Assembly (NCBI GenBank): GCA_002104945.1
Contig: MCFH01000034.1
Location: 124,001-188,000, forward strand
Direction: 5' to 3'
From: Piromyces finnis finn
Lineage: Eukaryota > Fungi > Neocallimastigomycota
Length of the DNA: 64,000 bases
Under the pieces are notes generated by a model, which had not been told where the DNA came from, made no database searches, and saw nothing but the letters and a program-made list of their open reading frames with translations. Of this stretch, positions 16,438-55,522 are shown piece after piece; position 1 is the stretch's first letter, and every line of letters starts with the position of its first letter. The position numbers were made by a program, and so were the translations under genes.

Positions 16438-16474
<37 letters not shown>

Positions 16475-23954: not shown

Positions 23955-25358
23955 ATGAAATTCTTAGCTTGTGCTAGTATTCTTAGTTTAGGTCTTTTTA
24001 ATTTTGCCAACGCTGCCTGTGCTGGTCCATTCGCTCAATGTGGAGGGTAAATTTAAAATTTATTGTAAAACTAAAAATGTTAACAAATAGAGTATGTTAT
24101 TAAAATTTATTTATTATTTATTATAATATCAAAATTTATACAATTTCATTTAAATAGAAACAACTTCGAAGGTGAAGCTTGCTGTGAACCAGGTTATGAA
24201 TGTGTTGCCTTTAACGAATGGTACTCTCAATGCCAACAAAGTAGTTCTGCTGTTGTTCCAGAAGTTACTGTTACTGAAACTGTCGTCCCAACTATTACTG
24301 AAGAACCACCAGTTAATCAAGCTGTTAATAACGCCACTACTCAATATTACAGTCCAATTACTGCTAGTACTCAAAACTTCTTCCTTAACGAAATCTACCG
24401 TAATCCAAGATTCATTGAAGAAGTTGAATCTTCAATTCCTTTATTAACTCCAGAATTAGCTGCTAAGGCCGAAAAGGTTAAGGATGTCCCATCTGCTGTC
24501 TGGTTAGCTTGGGAAGGTGCTCCAGGTGAAGTTGAAGGTCACCTTGTTAATGCTGGTCCATCTCAAACTGTTGTTTTCCTTCTTTACATGATTCCAACTC
24601 GTGATTGTAACAGTTTAGCTTCTGCTGGTGGTGCTTCTAGTCTTGATAAGTACAAGGGTTATGTTGATGATATTTCTAACACTATTCGTAGTCACCCAGA
24701 AACCAATGTTGTTATGGTTGTTGAACCAGATACTCTTGGTAACCTTGTAACTGGTACTAGTGAAGCCTGTAAGAATGTTCACACTTTACACAAAAACGCC
24801 TTATCTTACGCTATTGATGTCTTCGGTTCTATGAGCAATGTTAGTGTTTACCTTGATGCTGCCCACGGTATGTGGTTAATTGATTATGCTGATGAAGCTG
24901 CTGCTGTTATTAGAGAAATTTTAGATGGAGCTCCAAACGGTAAGATTCGTGGTTTTAGTACCAATGTTTCTAACTTCCAACCAATTTACACTGAATATGA
25001 ATACTACTTAAAACTTACTGAATCTCTTGAAGCTCTTGGTGTTACTGGTATGCACTTTATCCTTGATACTGGTCGTAATGGTGTTGATGTTTACGAAGCC
25101 TTTGAAAAGACTAAGACCTGGTGTAACTATATTGGTACTGGTTTAGGTGAACGTCCAAAGGGTAATCCAGATGCTAGTATGCCTTTAATTGATGCTTACA
25201 TGTGGCTTAAGACTCCAGGTGAAGCTGATGGTTCTGCTGTCGGTGACAGAGCTGATCCAGTTTGTGCTCGTGAAGATTCTCTTCAATTAGCTCCAGATGC
25301 TGGTTCCTGGTTCCACGATTACTTTGTTCAATTATTAACTAACGCTCCAGGATTTTAA
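23955..25358 (+). CDS. Secreted CBM1-linker-GH6 cellobiohydrolase (CelA-type), paralogue 1
   Basis: Exon 1 23955-24046 (signal peptide MKFLACASILSLGLFNFANA + CAGPFAQCG). Phase-2 intron. Exon 2 24158-25358 (GNNFEGEACCEPGYECVAFNEWYSQC completes CBM1; T/E/P linker; GH6 motifs YMIPTRDC, VEPDTLGN, YLDAAHG, DTGRNG, WCN, WLKTPGEADG). Confidence 0.95.
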
Positions 25359-25785
25359 ATAAATCATACTTTTTAATTTAATTTAAAATATGTATAAATA
25401 ATTTAATTTATTTATTTATAGAATATTTATTTAAATTTATAGAAATTTTAAAACTACAAAACTATCAAATTATAAAATATTAGTTTAAAATTATTTATTA
25501 ATAAAAAAAATATATATATATAAATAAGAATGAAGTTCATAATGTTTTATACTAAAAATAATGAATCTATATATTCTGGGTTTTATAGGAGTATTAAAGC
25601 TTTTGCAATTTTTATGAGTAATTATTTTTAAACACATTTCTTTTTAATAAATATTTTGATTTGAATAATTATTTTAACTAATTAATGTTTTAAACATGAT
25701 AGTAATAGGGTTATACTAGATAAATAATCAGTAATATTTTCATATGCATAATATAATCCTTTATTTAATCCATGACAATAACAAT

Positions 25786-26031
25786 CCCTCTTGGGAACGT
25801 GCCTTCATTTATTTAATAAATGTAGTTTCTCAAGGGGGTCTACTCATGCTCATGGTACTGAGAGAGTAGAAAGAATTAAATCCAAGTATTGCGCAATGGA
25901 TGCTTGGTGCCCTCTTAGGAACGTGCCTTCATTTATTTAATAATGGAGTTTATCAAGGGGGTCTACTCATGCTCATGGTACTGAGAGAGTAGAAAGAATT
26001 AAATCCAAGCATTGCGCAATGGATGCTTGGT
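25786..26031 (+). repeat. Two tandem ~123-bp monomers at the LINE 5' end
   Basis: Monomer 1 25786-25909, monomer 2 25910-26031, both starting ccctctt(g/a)ggaacgtgcc and ending ggatgcttgg. Repeated in copy 2 (31855-32076). Confidence 0.95.
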
Positions 26032-26674
26032 TAGTCTTTAAGGGAAAATTATTAGGACTAAGCTCATGGTACTGAGCGATTAAAAAACATTTTATTCATC
26101 GAATTTAAGTATTTGATGAATAAGTTGAATGTTTGACATTCAGGTAAGTTTGTATAGTATTTAATTAGAAGAGTAATACATTTTGTTGCTGTATTTTTTC
26201 TTTTATTCATGTATTCATGTAGTACTACTCTTCTCTTGTAAGAATCCAATGTAGTCAACTTTAGCATTTGCATTGTACTTTTATATTCATGTAGCTATTG
26301 TTGTATTGTTTCTTGTAAGAGACTGATTCACTCTACATCATGTAAAAATACTATTCACAAGCTTTCTGGTGTCGACATTCTTGATTCAAATTTTTTACCA
26401 ATTTAAATATTTAATGAAAAGTAAAGTCAAACAAGTTTAGTGTCAAAAAGCGATTCGAATTTACTAACAACAAACCAAAACTAGAATTTTTAAAGAAAAT
26501 TTACAACTAGAATTCAAAAAAAGAAACTTTAAACAAAGCATCGTAACAATTTTTGTACTATCCAGTACTTTTAAGAAGAGAGAGAGAGACAGATTTTTTT
26601 TCCATATAAGTTATATTTATAATTTTTATTAGTATTTATTTTATATTCAATATTTTTAATTAGAATTTATTATC

Positions 26675-29600
26675 ATGTCAGTCCTTTATATTAAAGACAA
26701 GAATTATATCAGACGTGGTACCCGGTCTTATGGTATCCCCTTAGATGATATTCGCTCCTTCTTTATCCGTGGTATTCGATCATGGTCAGTAAATATGCTA
26801 TGGGAAAAACTCGAGGTTATTCTAGAAGATAAATTTAATTCAGTTATTAGTGTTAAATATTTTCAGACTTTCAATGATCACTTTTTCTTAGTCAAGGTTC
26901 ATGGTTCATCGAAAGATTGTATTAAAATCTTACACATGTTAAAGAAGAAACTTTCAGTTACCTCAATTTCCTTTTCAGCTCGTAGTAGAAGGAATCACAA
27001 ATACACTTTTTCCACTCTCAAACGTAAAATTTTAGTTTCTAATAAACATCAACATTCTATTCAACAATCATTTCAACAATCAGTTCAACAATCTCATCAA
27101 CAATCCGATCTTCAACTAGATCTTCAACAAGATCTTCAACAAGTTTCCAATCATGAAAATATTCCAGATCTACAGCAAACACAATTTCAATCTCAACATT
27201 CAACAATTAATTCTAATAGCTCTATCAACTCTGATAACAGTTCAATAGTTGATAGTTCTTCAGTTTCACAGCCATCTAGTAATAGTTCTACTTATTCCTC
27301 TGATGCATCATCCATTAATAACGATGACTTTAATAATAATAATAATAGCAACGATTCTTCCTCATCCAACAAGCCTGATAACTTTTCTTTTTGTCTTAGT
27401 TGGAACACCAATGGGTGGAATCACGAAAAGAGAGATAGTATTAGCTATTTCACAGCTATTTTCAAACCATTATTTTTATGTTTCCAAGAAACTGGTAATG
27501 GTTCTGGATCGAATACAGATTATCCTTGTCGTGTTACTTTGCGAAACTATAGACACTTTTTCAAGAAAGCTGACGAATCAGTTCCGGGAATGAGAGGTTT
27601 ATATTTAGGTTTTCACAATTCATGTCAAGCCTCACTTGAAAACTTCTCTGGAAAGTATATTATTTCTATTTATACTTTTAGTCTCTGGAATAGATTCAAA
27701 TGCTCGATTGGTAATGTTTATATGCCTCATAGTCATCACAACATCTATGTTGATCATGCAAAGTTAGAAGTTCGCTTGTGGTTACAAACTCATTCATCCC
27801 ATCCATCGATTCTTGTTGGTGATTTTAATATGTCTAAAGTAAAATTATCCAACTGGTTATCAACTAATGGATTAGGAGATTGGGAAATTCTTCCGCTTAG
27901 AGGGTCTACTATCTCTTGGACTCGAGGTGATCAATCTTCCGACATTGACCATGCTCTTATTAATTCGAAGATGAAAGATCTTATTCACTCAGGATCATTT
28001 ATAAATAATTTTTATCCTGTATCAGACCATAAGCCACTTCTTATTAATGGTAAAATTTTTCCTATGGAAGATTTTTCTAATGACTTTAATGTTCCTAAGA
28101 AAATTCTGAAATGGAATAGATTAAAATGTATTGAGGAAAAGGAATCTATTCTCAGTCATAATAAATTCCAAATACTTTCAGCAAAATCCAACGATCCTAA
28201 TGTTTCTACAGATGAACTTTCCAAAGAGTTTACTTCAACTGCTTTTTCAATTGCAGACGAGCTCAGTATTACTTCAGCAAATAATGTTATAAAGTCTTCA
28301 TTTCATATTTCACAACAAATTTTTAATCTTCAAAAAATCAAAATGAAGTTGTATAAGAGATTTAAAAAAGAAAGAATTTATGATATAGATGAATTTATTA
28401 AAAGAATTAAAATCTACCGTAAACTCATTGATTACATCCACAAAAGATGTAATGAATTTAGGAAGCAAGAATATCTTCATTGGATTAAAACAGGATGTGA
28501 GTATATGAAGAGTCATAATCCTAAGAAGGCCTGGAAATGGATCAAGAAAACTGCAAAAATTGGAAAAGATTCTTTCTTTATTGCTCAACCAATTAAAAAT
28601 AAAAATGGAGAATTAGTTGTTGCTACGGAAGAACAACTAGATGTGTGGCATGATCATTTCGAAAATCTTGCATCAGACCCAAGTGGTGTAAGTCTTGATT
28701 TGGAGCATTGGTATGAAGAACCAACGAATAAACGTTTTTCACTTCCTATGCTTGATGAGTGGGATATCAACCAAGATATTAGTATTGATGAAGTCAAGTC
28801 AGCTATCCTCACTACTCCAAATTATAAAGCATCAGGTCCGGATGGTATTCCAATTGAATTTTACAAAGCATTAGTTCCATCAAGTAATGATTCTAATAAT
28901 GCTACAGATAATAATTCTTCTGGTAATACTACTTCAGATAATGATGCTCATGGTTTAAATTTTATTCTTAAATTATTCAACCGTATTTGGGATGGAGATT
29001 TCCCCAACTCATGGAATGAATCCAGTATTGTTTCTATTCCTAAGAAGGGTGATTTGACAGATTGTGATAACTATCGAGGTATATCACTTATCAATAATGG
29101 TATTAAGTTGATTTCCAAAATTGTCACCACTAGAATCTCAGAATATGGTTTAAAGAATAATTTCATTAGACCTGAACAATTTGGTTTTCGAAAAAAGGAA
29201 GAAAGTATTAGTCTTTTCATTTCAATCCAAGAAATATGCCGTAGACGTCAATTAGATAATAAAGAGACATATTTGGCCTTTTTAGATCTCAGGAAAGCAT
29301 ACGATTCAGTCCCAATCGGTAATATTCTCCATAAATTAGATTGTTTAGGAATCCGAGGTAAGAGTCTACAATTTATCAAAAATTTATATTTAACATCTAA
29401 GGCTAATGTCAAATTAGATGGACAATTCTCGAAATCTTTTGATGTGAAGAAAGGAGTCCGTCAAGGTTGCCCTCTTTCTCCTATTCTCTTTAATCTCTTT
29501 ATTAATGATATATTTAGAGAGTGCGAAGATCTAGGAGTCAGTTTAGGTGACACTCGATGCTGTGGTGGACTTTTTGCAGATGATATAGTTATTTGTGCTC

Positions 29601-31198
29601 CAACAAGAGGATGCTTAAAAAAGATGCTTAGAAGAGTTAATGAATGGGCATTGTATAATGAAATGGAATTTGGTATCCAGAAATGTTCAACGATGGTGAT
29701 TCGTCCTGAATCAATAGAAAATCAGAACAAGAGAGATCCAACATTTTACTTAGCAGGACAACCCATTCCAACTACTGATTGCTATACTTATCTTGGTGTT
29801 CCATTTGATAAGAATCTGTCCCTTAAACCAGTAATTAAAGCTCTTAATAACAAGGTTTTGAAAGGGCTTTTCTCAGTCAGTAAATTCTTAAGAAATCCTA
29901 ATATTCCTATTCCTTTCAAAAAACTAGTACTTAACTCACAAGTGATTAGCAGAGTTTCATACTTTGCACCATTACTTGGATCCAACAAAGCTAGGTCTAG
30001 GATTGCTCAGAAGCATGTTAACAAAGGAATACGATGGGTTGCCGGAGTTCATAAAGCTGTATCGTTTATATCTTTATACTCTATTTCAAAAGATTTGAAT
30101 ATTCCTCCATTGTCAGCCAAATGTGCGTTAGCTCAGGTTAGATGTTTTAACAAATGGAAAAACTCAAATTGTATTATCTCACACCTTGTCAATTACATTC
30201 CTAAATTTAGAAAATACACGTGGTGCAAATCAAGTAGGACACTTGATAAAAAACTAAAGAAGCATGGAGATGTTAAAGCAGTTAAAAACTTTTATTGGAA
30301 AGATCTCAAAGGGAATTCAATCAAAGCGCAATATTATGATGATAATAAATTTATTGAAACTAAAGATTTTATTAAATTATGTTATGAGTACCCAGAGTTT
30401 GCCTATGGCTTCTACTGGCTATTGAAAGCAAGAAGCGGATACAAGTTGGATGCTAGAGTTGCCAAAGCTGCCAAATTTGTTGATCCAGTTTGTCCTAACT
30501 ACTGTCCATGTTGCAAGTGTGGAGATCAAAGTATTAAACATTGGTTATTAGATTGTCCAACATTTAGAGATATCCGTATTAAACATTATGATTCCATAGT
30601 CCAGCTATTAAATTTTTTCAGTCAACGTAATTCCAATAGTCCTATCAATAATAATGAAATTGATAATATCAGTAGAGATAGTAATAACATTAATACTAAT
30701 AGTAACAATAGTAGTAATAACAATAGTAATAGTAACAATAGTAATAGTAACAATAGTAATAATAACAATAATAGAAATAATAATATTAGTAATGATAGCA
30801 ATAGTGAAGATAATAATTCTAATTTAGATAGTAATTTAGTTAATGATAGTAATAGTTCTAATAATCCGGTGAATATTAATGTGTATGATTATTCTAGTGT
30901 GTGCAGTAAAATATTTAAATTCCTTCTTGGGGGAAGAAGTTTTAACAATATTAATTACAATTCAAGGGAATGGAAAGAACTTTGTAAGCGTCAGATTCAA
31001 TCTGATACTAACGAAGGAACACCATTCTTGACGGTAACCGCGGAACTTCTAACCAAAATCATGCCTTTTGCTATTGGCCAGCAATGGTCAATGTTCAAAA
31101 GGTTTGAAGCAACATCCAAGAGCGTCAATGCTGAAGAAACAGTAAGACAGGCCAGGAGGGCCAGCGCAACCAATGGAGATCATAATTTTGTTCCATGA
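26675..31198 (+). CDS. LINE polyprotein: N-terminal domain + Q/S/N-rich linker + APE endonuclease + reverse transcriptase + CCHC zinc knuckle
   Basis: APE motifs SWNTNG, FQET, GDFN, IDH, SDH. RT motifs KASGPDGIP, YRGISL, QFGFR, FLDLRKAYDSV, GVRQGCPLSPILF, FADD (29573-29584), YTYLG. C-terminal CPCCKCGDQSIKHWLLDC. Confidence 0.95.
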   Translation: MSVLYIKDKNYIRRGTRSYGIPLDDIRSFFIRGIRSWSVNMLWEKLEVILEDKFNSVISVKYFQTFNDHFFLVKVHGSSKDCIKILHMLKKKLSVTSISFSARSRRNHKYTFSTLKRKILVSNKHQHSIQQSFQQSVQQSHQQSDLQLDLQQDLQQVSNHENIPDLQQTQFQSQHSTINSNSSINSDNSSIVDSSSVSQPSSNSSTYSSDASSINNDDFNNNNNSNDSSSSNKPDNFSFCLSWNTNGWNHEKRDSISYFTAIFKPLFLCFQETGNGSGSNTDYPCRVTLRNYRHFFKKADESVPGMRGLYLGFHNSCQASLENFSGKYIISIYTFSLWNRFKCSIGNVYMPHSHHNIYVDHAKLEVRLWLQTHSSHPSILVGDFNMSKVKLSNWLSTNGLGDWEILPLRGSTISWTRGDQSSDIDHALINSKMKDLIHSGSFINNFYPVSDHKPLLINGKIFPMEDFSNDFNVPKKILKWNRLKCIEEKESILSHNKFQILSAKSNDPNVSTDELSKEFTSTAFSIADELSITSANNVIKSSFHISQQIFNLQKIKMKLYKRFKKERIYDIDEFIKRIKIYRKLIDYIHKRCNEFRKQEYLHWIKTGCEYMKSHNPKKAWKWIKKTAKIGKDSFFIAQPIKNKNGELVVATEEQLDVWHDHFENLASDPSGVSLDLEHWYEEPTNKRFSLPMLDEWDINQDISIDEVKSAILTTPNYKASGPDGIPIEFYKALVPSSNDSNNATDNNSSGNTTSDNDAHGLNFILKLFNRIWDGDFPNSWNESSIVSIPKKGDLTDCDNYRGISLINNGIKLISKIVTTRISEYGLKNNFIRPEQFGFRKKEESISLFISIQEICRRRQLDNKETYLAFLDLRKAYDSVPIGNILHKLDCLGIRGKSLQFIKNLYLTSKANVKLDGQFSKSFDVKKGVRQGCPLSPILFNLFINDIFRECEDLGVSLGDTRCCGGLFADDIVICAPTRGCLKKMLRRVNEWALYNEMEFGIQKCSTMVIRPESIENQNKRDPTFYLAGQPIPTTDCYTYLGVPFDKNLSLKPVIKALNNKVLKGLFSVSKFLRNPNIPIPFKKLVLNSQVISRVSYFAPLLGSNKARSRIAQKHVNKGIRWVAGVHKAVSFISLYSISKDLNIPPLSAKCALAQVRCFNKWKNSNCIISHLVNYIPKFRKYTWCKSSRTLDKKLKKHGDVKAVKNFYWKDLKGNSIKAQYYDDNKFIETKDFIKLCYEYPEFAYGFYWLLKARSGYKLDARVAKAAKFVDPVCPNYCPCCKCGDQSIKHWLLDCPTFRDIRIKHYDSIVQLLNFFSQRNSNSPINNNEIDNISRDSNNINTNSNNSSNNNSNSNNSNSNNSNNNNNRNNNISNDSNSEDNNSNLDSNLVNDSNSSNNPVNINVYDYSSVCSKIFKFLLGGRSFNNINYNSREWKELCKRQIQSDTNEGTPFLTVTAELLTKIMPFAIGQQWSMFKRFEATSKSVNAEETVRQARRASATNGDHNFVP

Positions 31199-31435
31199 CA
31201 AAATTTTGATCTTTGGCTCGGTGTCCCATTGGAAGTCAAATACAATTATTATACTTTAGTATGATAGTGGCTTTCTTACTTTAATTAAAATTACTAGAAT
31301 ACATTATACCCAATTTTTATTCATTTGTGTTTATTTAAACATATTTTTTTTTATTTTTATTTTAATTTTAATTTTTTTATTACATGTATTATAATTTTAA
31401 TTAAATTAATAATAAAGTTTAAAATATTTGATGCC

Positions 31436-31492
<57 letters not shown>

Positions 31493-31681
31493 ACAATAAC
31501 AATAAATAATATTTGTATTTATAATATATATAAATAATATTATATTGAAAATCGAATTCTAGAATGAAAGTTTTTTTTTGAAATCAATAATCATTCGCAA
31601 AGTATAGTTTTATAGTTTTATTATAGTTTTTATTTGCTTTCGTAAAAATAAATAGTTTTTAAATTTATATATTATTTTTAT

Positions 31682-31854
31682 TTGGAAGTCAAATACAATT
31701 ATTATACTTTAGTATAATAGTGGCTTTCTTACTTTAATTAAAATTACTAGAATACATTATACCCAATTTTTATTCATTTGTGTTTATTTAAACATATTTT
31801 TTTTTATTTTTATTTTTATTTTTATTATTTTCTAAAGAAGCATGGAGATATTAA
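31682..31854 (+). mobile_element. Patchwork of LINE family 1 pieces at the 5' junction of copy 2
   Basis: 31682-~31815 repeats the LINE 3' UTR (ttggaagtcaaatacaatt...aaacatatttttttt). 31832-31854 (ctaaagaagcatggagatattaa) is identical to ORF-internal 36306-36328. Confidence 0.85.
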
Positions 31855-34800
31855 TATTTAATAAATGTAGTTTCTCAAGGGGGTCTACTCATGCTCATGG
31901 TACTGAGAGAGTAGAAAGAATTAAATCCAAGTATTGCGCAATGGATGCTTGGTGCCCTCTTAGGAACGTGCCTTCATTTATTTATTAATGAAGTTTATCA
32001 AGGGGGTCTACTCATGCTCATGGTACTGAGAGAGTAGAAAGAATTAAATCCAAGCATTGCGCAATGGATGCTTGGTTAGTCTTTAAGGGAAAATTATTAG
32101 GACTAAGCTCATGGTACTGAGCGATTAAAAAACATTTTATTCATCGAATTTAAGTATTTGATGAATAAGTTGAATGTTTGATACTCAGGTAAGTTTGTAT
32201 AGTATTTAATTAGAAGAGTAATACATTTTGTTGCTGTATTTTTTTCTTTTATTCATGTATTCATGTAGTACTACTCTTCTCTTGTAAGAATCTAATGTAG
32301 TCAACTTTAGCATTTGCATTGTATTTTTATATTCATGTAGCTATTGTTGTATTGTTTCTTGTAAGAGACTGATTCACTCTACATCATGTAAAAATACTAT
32401 TCACAAGCTTTCTGGTGTCGACATTCTTGATTCAAATTTTTTACCAATTTAAATATTTAATGAAAAGTAAAGTCAAACAATTTTAGTGTCAAAAAGCGAA
32501 TCGAATTTACTAACAACAAACCAAAACTAGAATTTTTAAAGAAAATTTACAACTAGAATTCAAAAAAAAAGAAACTTTAAACAATGCATCGTAACAATTT
32601 TTGTTCTATCCAGTACTTTTAAGAAGAGAGAGAGAGACAGATTTTTTTCCATATACGTTATATTTGTAATTTTTATTAGTATTTATTTTATATTCAATAT
32701 TTTTTAATTAGAATTTATTATCATGTCAGTCCTTTATATTAAAGATAAGAATTATATCAGACGTGGTACCCGGTCTTATGGTATCCCCTTAGATGATATT
32801 CGCTCCTTCTTTATCCGTGGTATTCGATCATGGTCAGTAAATATGCTATGGGAAAAACTCGAGGTTATTCTAGAAGATAAATTTAATTCAGTTATTAGTG
32901 TTAAATATTTTCAGACTTTCAATGATCACTTTTTCTTAGTCAAGGTTCATGGTTCATCGAAAGATTGTATTAAAATCTTACACATGTTAAAGAAGAAACT
33001 TTCAGTTACCTCAATTTCCTTTTCAGCTCGTAGTAGAAGGAATCACAAATACACTTTTTCCACACTCAAACGTAAAATTTTAGTTTCTAATAAACATCAA
33101 CTTTCAATTCAACAATCACTTCAACAATCAGTTCAACAATCTCATCAACAATCCGATCTTCAACTAGATCTTCAACAAGATCTTCAACAAGTTTCCCATC
33201 ATGAAAATATTCCAGATCTACAGCAAACACAATTTCAATCTCAACATTCAACAATTAATTCTAATAGCTCTATCAACTCTGATAACAGTTCAATAGTTGA
33301 TAGTTCTTCAGTTTCACAGCCATCTAGTAATAGTTCTACTTATTCCTCTGATGCATCATCCATTAATAACGATGACTTTAATAATAATAATAATAGCAAC
33401 GATTCTTCCTCATCCAACAAGCCTGATAACTTTTCTTTTTGTCTTAGTTGGAACACCAATGGGTGGAATCACGAAAAGAGAGATAGTATTAGCTATTTCA
33501 CAGCTATTTTCAAACCATTATTTTTATGTTTCCAAGAAACTGGTAATGGTTCTGGATCGAATACAGATTATCCTTGTCGTGTTACTTTGCGAAACTATAG
33601 ACACTTTTTCAAGAAAGCTGATGAATCAGTTCCGGGAATGAGAGGTTTATATTTAGGTTTTCACAATTCGTGTCAAGCCTCACTTGAAAACTTCTCTGGA
33701 AAGTATATTATTTCTATTTATACTTTTAGTCTCTGGAATAGTTTCAAATGCTCGATTGGAAATGTTTATATGCCTCATAGTCATCACAACATCTATGTTG
33801 ATCATGCAAAGTTAGAAGTTCGCTTGTGGTTACAAACTCATTCATCCCATCCATCGATTCTTGTTGGTGATTTTAATATGTCTAAGGTAAAATTATCCAA
33901 CTGGTTATCAACTAATGGATTAGGAGATTGGGAAATTCTTCCGCTTAGAGGGTCGACTATCTCTTGGACTCGAGGTGATCAATCTTCCGACATTGACCAT
34001 GCTCTTATCAATTCGAAGATGAAAGATCTTATTCACTCAGGATCATTTATAAATAATTTTTATCCTGTATCAGACCATAAGCCACTTCTTATTAATGGTA
34101 AAATTATTCCTATGGAAGATTTTTCTAATGACTTTAATGTTCCTAAGAAAATTCTGAAATGGAATAGATTAAAATGTATTGAGGAAAAGGAATCTATTCT
34201 CAGTCATAATAAATTCCAAATACTTTCAGCAAAACTCAACGATCCTAATGTTTCTACAGATAAACTTTCCAAAGAGTTTACTTCAACTGCTTTTTCCATT
34301 GCAAACAAGCTCAGTATTACCTCAGCAAATAATGTTATAAAGTCTTCATTTCATATTTCACAACAAATTTTTAATCTTCAAAAAATCAAAATGGAGTTGT
34401 ATAAGAGATTTAAAAAAGAAAGAATTTATGATATAGATGAATTTATTAAAAGAATTAAAATCTACCGTAAGCTCATTGATTACATCCACAAAAGATGTAA
34501 TGAATTTAGGAAGCAAGAATATCTTCATTGGATTAAAACAGGATGTGAGTATATGAAGAGTCATAATCCTAAGAAGGCCTGGAAATGGATCAAGAAAACT
34601 GCAAAAATTGGAAAAGATTCTTTCTTTATTGCTCAACCAATTAAAAATAAAAATGGAGAATTAGTTGTTGCTACGGAAGAACAACTAGATGTGTGGCATG
34701 ATCATTTCGAAAAGCTTGCATCAGATCCAAGTGGTGTAAGTTTTGATTTGGAGCATTGGTATGAAGAACCAACGAATAAACGTTTTTCACTTCCTATGCT

Positions 34801-37535
34801 TGATGAGTGGGATATCAACCAAGATATTAGTATTGATGAAGTCAAGTCAGCTATCCTCACTACTCCAAATTATAAAGCATCAGGTCCGGATGGTATTCCA
34901 ATTGAATTTTACAAAGCATTAATTCCATCAAGTAATGATTCTAATAATGCTACAGATAATAATTCTTCCGGCCGGTAATACCACTTCAGATAATGATGCT
35001 CATGGTTTAAATTTTATTCTTAAATTATTCAACCGTATTTGGGATGGAGATTTCACCAACTCATGGAATGAATCCAGTATTGTTTCTATTCCTAAGAAGG
35101 GAGATTTGACAGATTGTGATAACTATCGAGGTATATCACTTATCAATAATGGTATTAAGTTGATTTCCAAAATTGTCACCACTAGAATCTCAGAATATGG
35201 TCTAAAGAATAATTTCATTAGACCTGAACAATTTGGTTTTCGAAAAAAGGAAGAAAGTATCAGTCTTTTCATTTCAATCCAAGAAATATGCCGTAGACGT
35301 CAATTAGATAATAAAGAGACATATTTGGCCTTTTTAGATCTCAGGAAAGCATACGATTCAGTCCCAATCGGTAATATTCTCCATAAATTAGATTGTTTAG
35401 GAATCCGAGGTAAGAGTTTACAATTCATCAAAAATTTATATTTAACATCTAAGGCTAATGTCAAATTAGATGGACAATTCTCGAAATCTTTTGATGTGAA
35501 GAAAGGAGTCCGTCAAGGTTGCCCTCTTTCTCCTATTCTCTTTAATCTCTTTATTAATGATATATTTAAAGAGTGCGAAGATCTCGGAGTCAGTTTAGGT
35601 GACACTCGATGCTGTGGTGGACTTTTTACAGATGATATAGTTATTTGTGCTCCAACAAGAGGATGCTTAAAAAAGATGCTTAGAAGAGTTAATGAATGGG
35701 CATTGTATAATGAAATGGAATTTGGTATCCAGAAATGTTCAACGATGGTGATTCGTCCTGAATCAATAGAAAATCAGAACAAGAGAGATCCAACATTTTA
35801 CTTAGCAGGACAACCCATTCCAACTACTGATTGTTATACTTATCTTGGTGTTCTATTTGATAAGAATTTGTCCCTTAAACCAGTAATTAAAGCTCTTAAT
35901 AACAAGGTTTTGAAAGGACTTTTCTCAGTCAGTAAATTCTTAAGAAATCCTAATATTCCTATTCCTTTCAAAAAGCTAGTACTTAACTCACAAGTGATTA
36001 ACAGAGTTTCATACTTTACACCATTACTTGGATCCAACAAAGCTAGGTCTAGGATTGCTCAGAAGCATGTTAACAAAGGAATACGATGGGTTGCCGGAGT
36101 TCATAAAGCTGTATCGTTTATATCTTTATACTCTATTTCAAAAGATTTGAATATTCCTCCATTGTCAGCCAAATGTGCGTTAGCTCAGGTTAGATGTTTT
36201 AACAAATGGAAAAACTCAAATTGTATTATCTCACACCTTGTCAATTACATTCCTAAATTTAGAAAATACACGTGGTGCAAATCAAGTAGGACACTTGATA
36301 AAAAACTAAAGAAGCATGGAGATATTAAAGCAATTAAAAACTTTTATTGGAAAGATCTCAAAGGGAATTCAATCAAAGCGCAATATTATGATGATAATAA
36401 ATTTATTGAAACTAAAGATTTTATTAAATTATGTTATGAGTACCCAGAGTTTGCCTATGGCTTCTACTGGCTATTGAAAGCAAGAAGCGGATACAAGTTG
36501 GATGCTAGAGTTGCCAAAGCTGCCAAATTTGTTGATCCAGTTTGTCCTAACTACTGTCCATGTTGCAAGTGTGGAGATCAAAGTATTAAACATTGGTTAT
36601 TAGATTGTCCAACATTTAGAGATATCCGTATTAAACATTATGATTCCATAGTCCAGCTATTAAATTTTTTCAGTCAACGTAATTCCAATAGTCCTATCAA
36701 TAATAATGAAATTGATAATATCAGTAGAGATAGTAATAACATTAATAGTAATAGTAACAATAGTAGTAATAACAATAGTAATAGTAACAATAGTAATAAT
36801 AACAATAGTAGTAATAGAAATAGTAATAATAACAATAGTAGTAATAGAAATAATAATATTAGTAATGATAACAATAGTGAAGATAATAATTCTAATTTAG
36901 ATAGTAATTTAGTTAATGATAGTAATAGTTCTAATAATCCGGTGAATATTAATGTGTATGATTATTCTAGTGTGTGCAGTAAAATATTTAAATTCCTTCT
37001 TGGGGGAAGAAGTTTTAACAATATTAATTACAATTCAAGGGAATGGAAAGAACTTTGTAAGCGTCAGATTCAATCTGGTACTAACGAAGGAACACCATTC
37101 TTGACGGTAACCGCGGAACTTCTAACCAAAATCATGCCTTTTGCTATTGGCCAGCAATGGTCAATGTTCAAAAGGTTTGAAGCAACATCCAAGAGCGTCA
37201 ATGCTGAAGAAACAGTAAGACAGGCCAGGAGGGCCAGCGTAACCAATGGAGATCATAATTTTGTTCCATGACAAAATTTTGATCTTTGGCTCGGTGTCCC
37301 ATTGGAAGTCAAATACAATTATTATACTTTTGTATGATAGTGGCTTTCTTACTTTAATTAAAATTACTAGTATACATTATACCCAATTTTTATTCATTTG
37401 TGTTTATTTAAACATATTTTTTTTATTTTTATTTTTATTTTTTAATTTTTTATTACATGTATTATAATTTTAATTAAATTAATAATAAAGTTTAAAATAT
37501 TTGATGCCGTTAAAAAAAAAAAAAAAAAAAAAAAA
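31855..37535 (+). mobile_element. LINE family 1, copy 2 (near full length, disrupted)
   Basis: Near-identical to copy 1; lacks the first ~24 nt of monomer 1; poly-A at 37512-37535. Confidence 0.95.
32723..37271 (+). pseudogene. Frameshifted LINE polyprotein of copy 2
   Basis: tcttccggccggtaat versus copy 1 tcttctggtaat: a net 4-nt gain giving ccggccgg (34968-34975) splits the ORF into 32723-34978 and 34935-37271. The RT motif FADD has become FTDD. Confidence 0.92.
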
Positions 37536-39425: not shown

Positions 39426-40964
39426 ATGAAATTATTTTTTATTAGTGTTTTTATTACATTAATAAAATTCACATTTTGTTCTAAAGATAAAGGTAAATAT
39501 CTTAAACTGAATAAAAGTGATGAAGAGGCATATTTAGTTGCTAAAAATTGTGAAGAAGTATATATATGTTATAAACATACTAAAGAGAATTGGATACTTG
39601 GAGGTGATATTTTAGAAAAATGTTATTATTGAGGTGAACTATTAGATGATAAAATTAATGTAGATGAAAATAGTTTCAATAATCCAGATAAATGCTCAAT
39701 TAAAAGATATACTTATGTTTCAACTGACGCTTGTTTTATGTCAAGTACTGGAAAAAATAAAATTATTAAAGGTTTTACTTCAGTACAATTATTACCTTAC
39801 TATGATATTGATATTATTAATAATCGTGTTTTAACTGAGATGGGATGGTGTATACATTCATATGAAATTATAGATTCTAACTGGTTGAGTTATATTGATG
39901 ATGATTTACGTATTAATCAAATTAATATTCCTGGTACTCATGATACTGGAACGTATAATATAGTGAAAATATGGTATAAGGATTCATCTGTTAGTGTATC
40001 AAATCTAGCAGTAGTTATAGTTGAAGCATCATTAAAAACTTATACTGCACAAACTCAAGATCTAAGTATTACAGAACAATTGGAAAATGGAATTAGATAT
40101 TTAGATATAAGATTAGCTTTAGATAGTGAAAATAGTCCATTTTATCTTTGTCATGGTCCTTTTGTATGTTATGATAATAATGGTCAACAATATCTTTATT
40201 TTAAATCAGTAATTAAATATTGTATAGATTTTTTAAATGAGCATAAAAAAGAAACGATTATTTTACATTTAAAGAGAGAAAATATTAGCAAAAAAATAGA
40301 AGATAAGAGTATTGGAATATTAATTAAATTAATTGGTAAACAAATGTATAGCAAAGATAAAAGATATTTAGATTATTTCTATGTTCCAAATAGTATTGAT
40401 GATAATTATACTAATGCTATAAACCAACTCTTGGTGAAATATGAGGTAGAATTATTTTCTTATCAAGATCTAAATTTTATTATAATGATAAAAGTATTCA
40501 ATCAACTTATCCAAAAAACAATTCTACAGCAAAAAAAAGAATCGGCAATTGGGTTTTATAGAGACATAAAAGATAAAGGAAATTGTAAAGATGATCCATT
40601 TGATAAATATAAAGATATATGTGAACCAATGGTAAAAAAAAATTTTCGTTGTCAAGATGATTATAAGCTTACTCCAAAATTGAAATGGTTGGTTGTAGCT
40701 GATTCACTGTTAGATGATAATAAATTTAATTATAAATATGATAATTATTTAGCACATACACTTAATTTTATGAATGTAGCATTTACTAATACCTTTCCTA
40801 ATTCTATTTCCTTAGCAGCCAAATATATGAATAAACATTTAACAGATTTTCTTAAAGCCAATCAAGTTATAAATGAATGGTTTGTTTTAGATTTTCCATC
40901 TATTAATGGTATTCGCGAAATTTATAATTCCAATTTTGGTGTAAATAAGCCACTATTATACTAA
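39426..40964 (+). pseudogene. Secreted PI-PLC X-domain (bacterial-type phosphatidylinositol phospholipase C-like) pseudogene
   Basis: Signal-peptide ORF 39426-39632 continues in frame past TGA into the 39738 ORF. Motifs WLSYIDDDLRINQINIPGTHDTG, QTQDLSITEQLENGIRYLDIR, LCHG, FLNEHKKETIILHLKRE. The PTLGE-x-x-GRII motif lies in a shifted frame with another stop. Confidence 0.8.
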
Positions 40965-41395
40965 AGTATAATAATTGTATTTGACTTCCAATGAGACACC
41001 GAGTCAAAGATCAAAACTTTATTATGGGACAAAATTATGATTTTCATCAGTTGCGCTGGCTCTCCTGGCCTGTCTTACTGTTTCTTCAGCATTGACGCTC
41101 TTGGATGTTGCTTCAAACCTTTTGAACATTGACCATTGCTGGCCAATAGCAAAAGGCATGATTTTGGTTAGAAGTTCCGCGGTTACCGTCAAGAATGGTG
41201 TTCCTTCATTAGTACCAGATTGAATCTGACGCTTACAAAGTTCTTTCCATTCCCTTGAATTGTAATTAATATTGTTAAAACTTCTTCCCCCAAGAAGGAA
41301 TTTAAATATTTTACTGCACACACTAGAATAATCATACACATTAATATTCACCGGATTATCATCCTCATTATTACTACTATTACTGTTATTTCTAA
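40947..41395 (-). mobile_element. Inverted 3' fragment of LINE family 1
   Basis: Minus ORF 41022-41351 equals the last ~109 aa of the LINE ORF, followed by the first part of the 3' UTR. A further decayed 3' UTR piece lies at ~41485-41575 on the minus strand. Confidence 0.92.

Positions 41396-55470: not shown

Positions 55471-55522
<52 letters not shown>

Follow-up and report, generated by a model that had tools for sequence, protein, structure and literature searches.

The reason why most APE-type LINEs need an abundant separate ORF1 protein is still debated. In L1 this protein (ORF1p) consists of a coiled coil, an RRM and a CTD and is made in large excess. The RRM domains of ORF1p reportedly fall into the types I and II of Khazina and Weichenrieder, and the plant BNR lineage has an RRM-only ORF1. 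L1Tc/Ingi elements feature an N-terminal 2A peptide, an RNase H and C2H2 motifs; RTE elements are not known to have a knuckle or a poly(A) tail and have a 3′ end of short repeats. In ORF1, the place of zinc knuckles can be taken by RRMs (PMC5203782; PMC4120745), and N-terminal ORF1-type PHD domains have already been published for single-ORF CR1/L2 elements (PMC4120745). The locus described here lies in a stretch of 64,000 nucleotides of contig MCFH01000034.1 of Piromyces finnis (the window) and combines a small basic N-terminal domain, hereafter the head, with an endonuclease, a reverse transcriptase (RT) and a zinc knuckle in one polypeptide. All features given below are located on the plus strand.

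The 13-bp sequence tgacaataacaat was read directly at both flanks of the element (25773–25785 and 31491–31503) and represents its target-site duplication (TSD). A 14th base, an ‘a’ (25772 / 31490), is possible and indistinguishable from the A tail; the 5′ duplication (25772–25785, 13 bp certain) is identical to 31490/31491–31503. Two tandem monomers of 123 bp (25786–26031; TRF: period 123, 2.0 copies, 95% match) open the 5′ UTR of 889 nt (25786–26674) and are probably an internal promoter region. The coding region is followed by a 3′ UTR of 240 nt, which extends from the stop codon to the A run (31199–31438), and by a poly(A) tail of 52 nt (31439–31490, 100% A by TRF). The perfect 13-bp TSD and the 52-nt poly-A that an earlier note had read from the letters are both present in the sequence. 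The TSD of the window is no chance match, since four further full-length copies share the start base of the element and each of them has its own duplication of 11–13 bp. The number of monomers varies between copies and so do the points of 5′ truncation. LTRs are absent, and the 3′ A tail, the variable TSDs, the 5′-truncated copies and the many dispersed copies are the features by which a LINE is recognised.

The element contains a single ORF of 1507 aa (26675–31198, stop included), whose frame is closed by a stop five codons upstream of the ATG. A separate ORF1 was not found in the 889-nt 5′ UTR, where the largest plus-strand ATG ORF comprises 30 aa, and the genome has a second subfamily whose 5′ UTR likewise contains no ORF of more than 30 aa. 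The uninterrupted frame and the missing ORF1 had both been claimed before and are borne out. A 2A ribosome-skipping site that would separate the head from the body was considered and rejected, as an NPGP-type motif is absent from the ORF; two unrelated matches (P0088 and P0090) do have the 2A motif.

A genome-wide census of copies, as suggested in the earlier note, yielded at least 150 near-identical copies in the P. finnis genome, about 90 of them with the full open frame (of the 150 scored copies, about 90 are open for 1490 aa or more). Six further copies are 99% identical across about 5.7 kb. The scored copies are scattered across many contigs and the N-terminal 125 aa are identical in 149 of the 150. 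At 30 loci 31 synonymous and no non-synonymous changes were counted, a biased ratio that we did not use for an estimate of purifying selection because the loci had been preselected for an identical protein. The assumption of a recent and possibly active insertion is supported by the TSD, the A tail and the near-identical copies, which indicate an intact, recently active single-ORF LINE. The family, which inhabits an anaerobic gut fungus, is a very young one of autonomous poly(A)-type LINEs with a high copy number.

The enzymatic body begins with an AP-type endonuclease (aa 241–452, 27395–28030; Pfam Exo_endo_phos, E 2.3e-7), whose 31.2 bits exceed the Pfam cut-off of 24.5 bits, a match that appears only when the segment is searched alone. 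The same domain was detected in 21 of the 25 family members, and the family profile matches the L1 endonuclease 2v0s (E 8.9e-8) and not the TRAS1/R1 endonucleases. The reverse transcriptase core follows at aa 788–1043 (29036–29803; Pfam RVT_1, E 1.2e-35); its only relatives in the PDB are L1 ORF2p (E 4.6e-33 for the human protein) and R2. Over the region from the endonuclease through the RT the family profile aligns with human L1 ORF2p at E 5.6e-48. A zinc knuckle of the type CX2CX8HX4C (aa 1277–1294, 30503–30556) has its C, C, H and C invariant in 23 sequences and gives a weak zf-RVT match. These Pfam domains and the invariant knuckle agree with the APE-RT-CCHC order deduced earlier.

An extra module of about 100 aa had also been postulated after the knuckle, and this claim has to be withdrawn. 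The segment is the conserved end of an ordinary LINE C-terminal domain, which is interrupted by an Asn-rich loop (aa 1316–1404, 30620–30886; 71% N+S+Q, pLDDT below 50): relatives that lack the loop have the same LLGG motif and helices. The helical end with its FLLGG motif (aa 1405–1484, 30887–31126) is conserved in relatives, and the distance from knuckle to LLGG amounts to 121 aa here, 49–50 aa in the second subfamily and about 40–50 aa in distant relatives. Among 48,161 chains the model of this region finds its two best structural matches in the C-terminal parts of R2 and of human L1 ORF2p. A decayed RNase H was rejected for this segment, which is helical and keeps the LLGG; the RNase H of P0045, a member of the wider clade, lies after it. 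Between head and endonuclease a second low-complexity region, the Q/S/N-rich linker (aa 126–236, 27050–27382), contains 61% N+S+Q and microsatellite-like 12-bp repeats, and it is absent in the second subfamily, whose endonuclease begins at aa 143. Both spacers had been noticed from the letters; these Q/S/N-rich regions represent expanded loops of a kind typical of the lineage.

The head itself (aa ~10–105, 26702–26989) is a basic domain of ferredoxin-like or RRM topology as judged from an AlphaFold2 model, the alignment and fold searches. The model, based on an alignment of 25 sequences, has a mean pLDDT of 82 with core blocks of 87–96 and consists of β1 (26–32), α1 (39–56), β2 (57–65), β3 (68–76), α2 (79–92) and β4 (97–102); it thereby reproduces all six elements (aa 26–102) of the β-α-β-β-α-β pattern that had been proposed by eye. 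A small hairpin before β1 carries R14, G15, R17 and G20, which are invariant or nearly so in the alignment. The N-terminal 125 aa have a pI of 10.3 with 25 K+R versus 9 D+E, so the domain is as basic as previously described. After β4 a basic tail follows (aa 103–125, 26981–27049; charge count), which is predicted to be helical; together with five linker residues (aa 103–130) it has eight K+R, no acidic residue and a pI of 12. Its RRNHK motif is kept in the closest relatives, and the tail is a candidate stretch for nucleic-acid binding or nuclear localisation.

Head and endonuclease belong together wherever the head was found. The head is conserved and always endonuclease-fused in the rumen-fungal relatives; in all, about 24 relatives (18–45% identity) show this arrangement. 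It is also fused in the second subfamily, where the identity is 32% (E 7e-5) for the head and 44% for the body. Among 1.84 billion proteins, a full search with HMMER revealed no relatives of the head outside the LINE family, and all head fragments of sufficient length found by this search continue into the endonuclease. In distant relatives a sequence HMM of the head was not significant, and a word-based search with the head alone returned nothing. A profile-profile comparison of the head with the heads of the wider clade gave P 4.2e-4 over 65 columns; on this alignment the head is probably present across the wider clade as well and homologous throughout it.

The earlier designation of the head as RRM-like or ORF1-like has to be divided. 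The RRM topology is reproduced by AlphaFold2, but homology to any ORF1p did not emerge from the HMMER search or from Pfam, where none of the 25 family members matched RRM (at E ≤ 1), Transposase_22 or another ORF1 family. The head domain alone gave no RRM family match at E ≤ 10. The β1 consensus (L/I)(I/F)FIHxL resembles RNP2 by eye only. In fold searches the RAM domain of Lrp/AsnC, ACT and NikR domains score equal to or slightly above RRMs, L1 ORF1p is not among the top structural matches, and a search of the ESM Atlas with the head gave scores of 0.82 or lower throughout, below the level that is meaningful for this tool. As modelled, the fold is generic, which counts against the reading of the head as a nucleic-acid-binding module.

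In the RT tree the family lies on the opposite side of a split (SH-aLRT 95) from the I-like and the CR1/L2-like matches; it is neither I-like nor CR1/L2-like. Pfam detected no RNase H in the ORF. P0045, the one clade member with an RNase H, has it after the knuckle; in I-like matches the order is RT, RNase H and then knuckle. A metagenome scan for P0045 gave a 23% match at best. RTE elements are recognised by a single short ORF, a missing knuckle and a 3′ end of short repeats, but here a knuckle and an A tail of 52 nt are present; of the Ingi/L1Tc features the NPGP-type motif and RNase H are absent and the knuckle is CCHC. The C-terminal CCHC of the L1 clade is found, a feature common to many clades, and the separate ORF1 of that clade is not. 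Of the relatives with a solved structure, human L1 ORF2p comes nearest, with 117 bits in the RT only. Membership of L1 proper is unsupported because this score is too low and is equalled by an unrelated fish LINE.

Whether the architecture has already been catalogued must be considered against this background. The element could belong to a described non-LTR clade with a single ORF and an N-terminal extension, for example one of the L1 or RTE group in Repbase, so that only the fold assignment would be new. We regard this as a serious possibility, though less than probable. The host genome has presumably been public since 2017, which we count in favour of it, and public metagenomes contain a wider clade with the same arrangement. 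Single-ORF APE clades such as Ingi, Vingi and RTE are known (PMC3894237). On the other hand, full-text searches yielded no description of LINEs from Neocallimastigomycota or of an RRM fused to ORF2, and no relative bears an informative protein name, including those from a search seeded with P0038. A one-ORF LINE with a fused N-terminal domain is in any case unusual and not unprecedented. As an observation on the public data, contigs of gut fungi contaminate archaeal and bacterial genome bins from the rumen.

We are inclined to see in the element an intact autonomous APE LINE whose fused head binds nucleic acid and does part of the job of ORF1p in cis, and we hold this for somewhat probable. 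Mobility would proceed by target-primed reverse transcription, as the anatomy and the independent insertions suggest: the endonuclease would nick AT-rich DNA and the reverse transcriptase would copy the polyadenylated RNA, leading to a target duplication of 11–14 bp. The low-complexity linker would join the head and its basic tail to the APE-RT-zinc-knuckle body. The head could then serve as a built-in nucleic-acid-binding module that seizes the RNA of the element when the protein emerges from the ribosome, acting in cis with one copy per enzyme and presumably covering part of what ORF1p does in a two-ORF LINE. It is the charge of the head (pI 10.3) that suggests RNA binding. Trimers of ORF1p coat RNA; the functional analogy with ORF1p may be only partial because one fused domain per enzyme cannot do so. 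Alternatively, an ORF1-like function could be supplied in trans by another element.

Other functions of the head can be conceived. Ferredoxin-like ACT/RAM domains are usually oligomerisation or regulatory modules, and the head could be such a module and/or carry a nuclear localisation signal in its basic tail, in which case the RNA would be left to the RT and the zinc knuckle; we rate this as unlikely. Just as unlikely, in our estimation, is a role in targeting DNA or chromatin, by which the head would guide the enzyme to the places of insertion in the manner of the zinc-finger/Myb domains of R2 or the PHD of CR1/L2. The head is basic, and Lrp/AsnC-type proteins occupy the top rows of the structural search, but they do so via the effector-binding RAM domain and not via the DNA-binding part. 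N-terminal targeting domains on single-ORF LINEs have been published (PMC4120745). However, the five insertion sites (that of the window and L001–L004), which are few for an AT-rich genome, have no motif in common beyond AT-richness, the copies are distributed over many contigs, and the fold corresponds to no known DNA-reading fold.

The strongest version of the favoured nucleic-acid-binding reading, in which the head is a true though highly diverged RRM with the role of ORF1p in cis and the family part of an undescribed old clade in gut fungi and metagenomic microbial eukaryotes, appears doubtful to us. If it applied, one polypeptide would perform RNA capture, nicking and reverse transcription across that clade, and the approximately 90 intact copies in one genome would represent a natural minimal APE-LINE for probing the need for ORF1p. 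Even apart from this version, a LINE family has been amplified to at least 150 near-identical copies with just a small basic domain of RRM topology on its enzyme, and anaerobic gut fungi are documented as carriers of highly active LINEs. If the head binds the RNA of the element, one-to-one capture in cis can suffice, and the element would lend itself to mechanistic studies as a compact one-protein APE-LINE.

Among the known systems R2 invites comparison as a single ORF with N-terminal nucleic-acid-binding domains, but its endonuclease is C-terminal and restriction-like and the element is site-specific, in contrast to the N-terminal APE and the dispersed insertions found here. Ingi, L1Tc, Vingi and RTE are of the APE type without an ORF1 (PMC3894237); Ingi/L1Tc and RTE differ in that the present element lacks 2A, RNase H and C2H2 and has both a knuckle and a poly(A) tail. 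The PHD-headed CR1/L2 elements (Metcalfe & Casane 2014, PMC4120745), exemplified by P0101 with a PHD at 94–141 followed by APE and RT, share the placement of an ORF1-type domain atop a single APE-RT ORF. Their domain is a PHD and not ferredoxin-like, they are without a C-terminal knuckle, and they stand across a well-supported split of the RT tree. With the RRM domains of ORF1p the head has in common that the 5′ end of a LINE codes for a basic β-α-β-β-α-β domain, but those domains reside in a separate ORF and their sequence similarity to the head is undetectable here. L1 shares the APE-RT-C-terminal domain order with CCHC, the poly(A) tail, variable TSDs, 5′ truncation and, in the mouse, the 5′ monomers; where L1 employs a separate ORF1p, the P. 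finnis element has a single RRM-topology domain fused to its enzyme.

The LINE at window positions 25786-31490 (forward strand) is flanked by two copies of the target-site duplication (TSD) tgacaataacaat, one directly abutting its first base (25773-25785) and the other directly following the A tail (31491-31503); one further 'a' on either side is indistinguishable from the tail. The tail consists of 52 uninterrupted A (31439-31490), and the 889-nt 5' UTR opens with two 123-bp monomers (25786-26031), both located by Tandem Repeats Finder. The sole long ORF, of 1507 aa, is encoded at 26675-31198 on the forward strand. It is not preceded by an ORF1, since ATG ORFs on the forward strand of the 5' UTR reach 30 aa at most and the frame of the long ORF closes five codons 5' of its ATG. 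The TSD pair, the 52 A and the ORF scan confirm the LINE with TSD, poly-A, 1507-aa ORF and no separate ORF1 that the earlier note had described. A perfect splice-donor-like string, cag/gtaagt, is present in the 5' UTR at 26141-26149.

The window's genome comprises 56,455,805 bases in 232 contigs and is very AT-rich. A DNA search (1389 first-look candidates) yielded six more near-full-length copies of 99% identity. When the first 125 aa were used as a protein query, 150 of 434 candidates were scored; these 125 residues were 100% identical in 149 of the 150, and in about 90, by our count, the frame stays open over at least 1490 aa (1493-1527 aa), length differences that would fit a varying length of the low-complexity spacers. 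Four other full-length copies share the element start and have their own TSDs of 11, 12, 13 and 11 bp. One of these four (L002, G000:C199:717-9403) is nested in another family member's 5' UTR, and its 12-bp TSD, tgtatagtattt, is the sequence found at window 26151-26162. Further copies have lost their 5' end at various points and vary in the number of monomers. Near-identical copies with their own TSDs and varied 5' truncations are what recent and repeated rounds of target-primed reverse transcription leave behind.

Directly downstream (window 31855-37535, reaching about 37641) lies another copy of this LINE, 98.2% identical and with an ORF broken after 756 aa. It is preceded by a 150-bp 3' fragment of the LINE (31682-31831), which indicates a local pile-up of insertions between 31682 and 37641. 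A 419-bp 3' fragment (96% identical) is found inverted on the minus strand at 40941-41359. Just upstream of the element, at 24588-25358, is a fragment ORF of a GH6 glycoside hydrolase (cellulase; Pfam Glyco_hydro_6, E 6e-57), and some 430 bp separate it from the LINE. Two tracts of 34-35 T, reading as A on the minus strand, at 16440-16473 and 55487-55521 may be tails of other retroposed sequences.

The enzymatic body consists of an apurinic/apyrimidinic-type endonuclease (APE; aa 241-452, Pfam Exo_endo_phos, 31.2 bits against a cut-off of 24.5 when the region was searched alone), a reverse transcriptase (RT; aa 788-1043, RVT_1, E 1.2e-35) and a zinc knuckle CX2CX8HX4C (aa 1277-1294), the four ligands of which are invariant in 23 sequences. 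Of the solved structures, only human L1 ORF2p (E 4.6e-33) and those of R2 proteins are related to it. The family profile aligns with L1 ORF2p over the whole stretch from endonuclease to RT (E 5.6e-48) and matches the isolated L1 endonuclease (E 8.9e-8); the TRAS1 and R1 endonucleases gave no match. In an AlphaFold2 model of aa 1225-1507 (overall pTM 0.62) the knuckle region has a pLDDT >90, the following Asn-rich stretch is disordered and three helices are predicted at aa 1405-1484 (block pLDDT means 73-97). The C-terminal helical segment opens with an LLGG motif, located 49-50 aa after the knuckle in a second subfamily of the same genome, about 40-50 aa in distant relatives and 64-192 aa in the subfamily of the window element. 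What had been taken for an extra module of ~100 aa is therefore where the C-terminal domain normally ends, and the Asn-rich stretch before it is a loop that has expanded.

There are many relatives with 40-69% body identity, almost all of them from rumen or gut metagenomes, and wherever their N-terminus is complete they carry the same basic N-terminal domain (head). R14 and R17 are invariant in the head alignment and G15, G20, I31 and W37 nearly so. AlphaFold2, run with the alignment of relatives, modelled the head with a mean pLDDT of 82 (87-96 for aa 21-100) and predicts a short hairpin (aa 12-14, 17-19), a core of b1 (26-32), a1 (39-56), b2 (57-65), b3 (68-76), a2 (79-92) and b4 (97-102), and a further helix (112-125). 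All six elements of the beta-alpha-beta-beta-alpha-beta pattern read from the sequence by the earlier note are thus reproduced, and an RRM-type topology of the head is supported by the model. The identity of the head as an RRM, or as a homologue of ORF1p, is not established. None of 25 family members matched RRM, Transposase_22 or any other ORF1 family. Foldseek with the head model returned nothing at E <= 0.001 and generic ferredoxin-like folds only, which leaves the fold no more closely defined. HMMER, run in full over 1.84 billion representatives, gave no more than 11 matches, all fragments of the same LINE family; those of sufficient length run on into the endonuclease.

The second subfamily (L045, G000:C2:1109782-1116843, and L044, L046 and L047) is likewise a single-ORF LINE with a poly(A) tail, several intact copies and a 1478-aa open frame. 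It has the head-APE-RT-knuckle layout of the window element without the long Q/S/N spacers, at 44% identity in the body, 32% in the head (E 7e-5) and 27% in the C-terminal segment (E 3e-6). More distant relatives (P0038-P0049, 26-32% identity) group with the fungal family in a single clade of the RT tree (SH-aLRT 98), and in each a beta-alpha-beta-beta-alpha-beta-like stretch was recognised by eye directly ahead of the endonuclease. Plain HMM searches between the head and these distant relatives gave no significant match; a profile-profile comparison gave P 4.2e-4 over 65 columns. In one distant member, the metagenomic P0045 (1704 aa), an RNase H has been added downstream of the zinc knuckle and the LLGG segment, a position shared with some plant L1s but not with I-group elements. 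In the I-like matches from the same search the RNase H lies between RT and knuckle, and the endonucleases match those of TRAS1/R1; the CR1/L2-like matches begin with PHD or 2A heads and lack the knuckle. A split in the RT tree (support 95) separates both groups from the fungal family. Domain order, heads and this split indicate that the family is neither I-like nor CR1/L2-like. Nor is it L1 proper, because its score to L1 ORF2p (117 bits) is the same as that of an unrelated fish LINE. None of the relatives is informatively named. Close relatives deposited under Methanobrevibacter or Gammaproteobacteria metagenome-assembled genomes (P0126, P0127, P0140 and P0154; MBR5953920.1, MBR5953921.1, MBR5954469.1 and MCR5564920.1) are almost certainly mis-binned anaerobic-fungal DNA.

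The intact APE-RT-knuckle ORF, the poly(A) tails, the variable duplications and the many young copies are the observed basis of the mechanism proposed here. Transcription would start from the monomeric 5' UTR and translation would give one 170-kDa protein, which presumably captures its own RNA in cis, enters the nucleus, nicks AT-rich DNA and performs target-primed reverse transcription. In the favoured reading the basic head and tail would help in RNA capture. The head is strongly basic, with a pI of 10.3 for aa 1-125 and of 12 for aa 103-130 (basic tail plus five linker residues), and a nucleic-acid-binding role of the head is plausible. Alternatively, the head may be a targeting module, or it may serve in oligomerisation or import.

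The observation of the earlier note is confirmed and its interpretation is partly supported. Full-text searches of the literature turned up neither a fusion of an RRM-topology domain to APE-RT nor any account of LINEs of Neocallimastigomycota. Single-ORF APE clades are known (Ingi, Vingi, RTE), and loss of ORF1 has been linked with N-terminal 2A peptides (PMC3894237); the window element has no 2A. PHD fingers are found as ORF1-type heads of single ORFs in CR1/L2 subgroups (PMC4120745), and the plant BNR lineage has RRM-only ORF1 proteins (PMC5203782).
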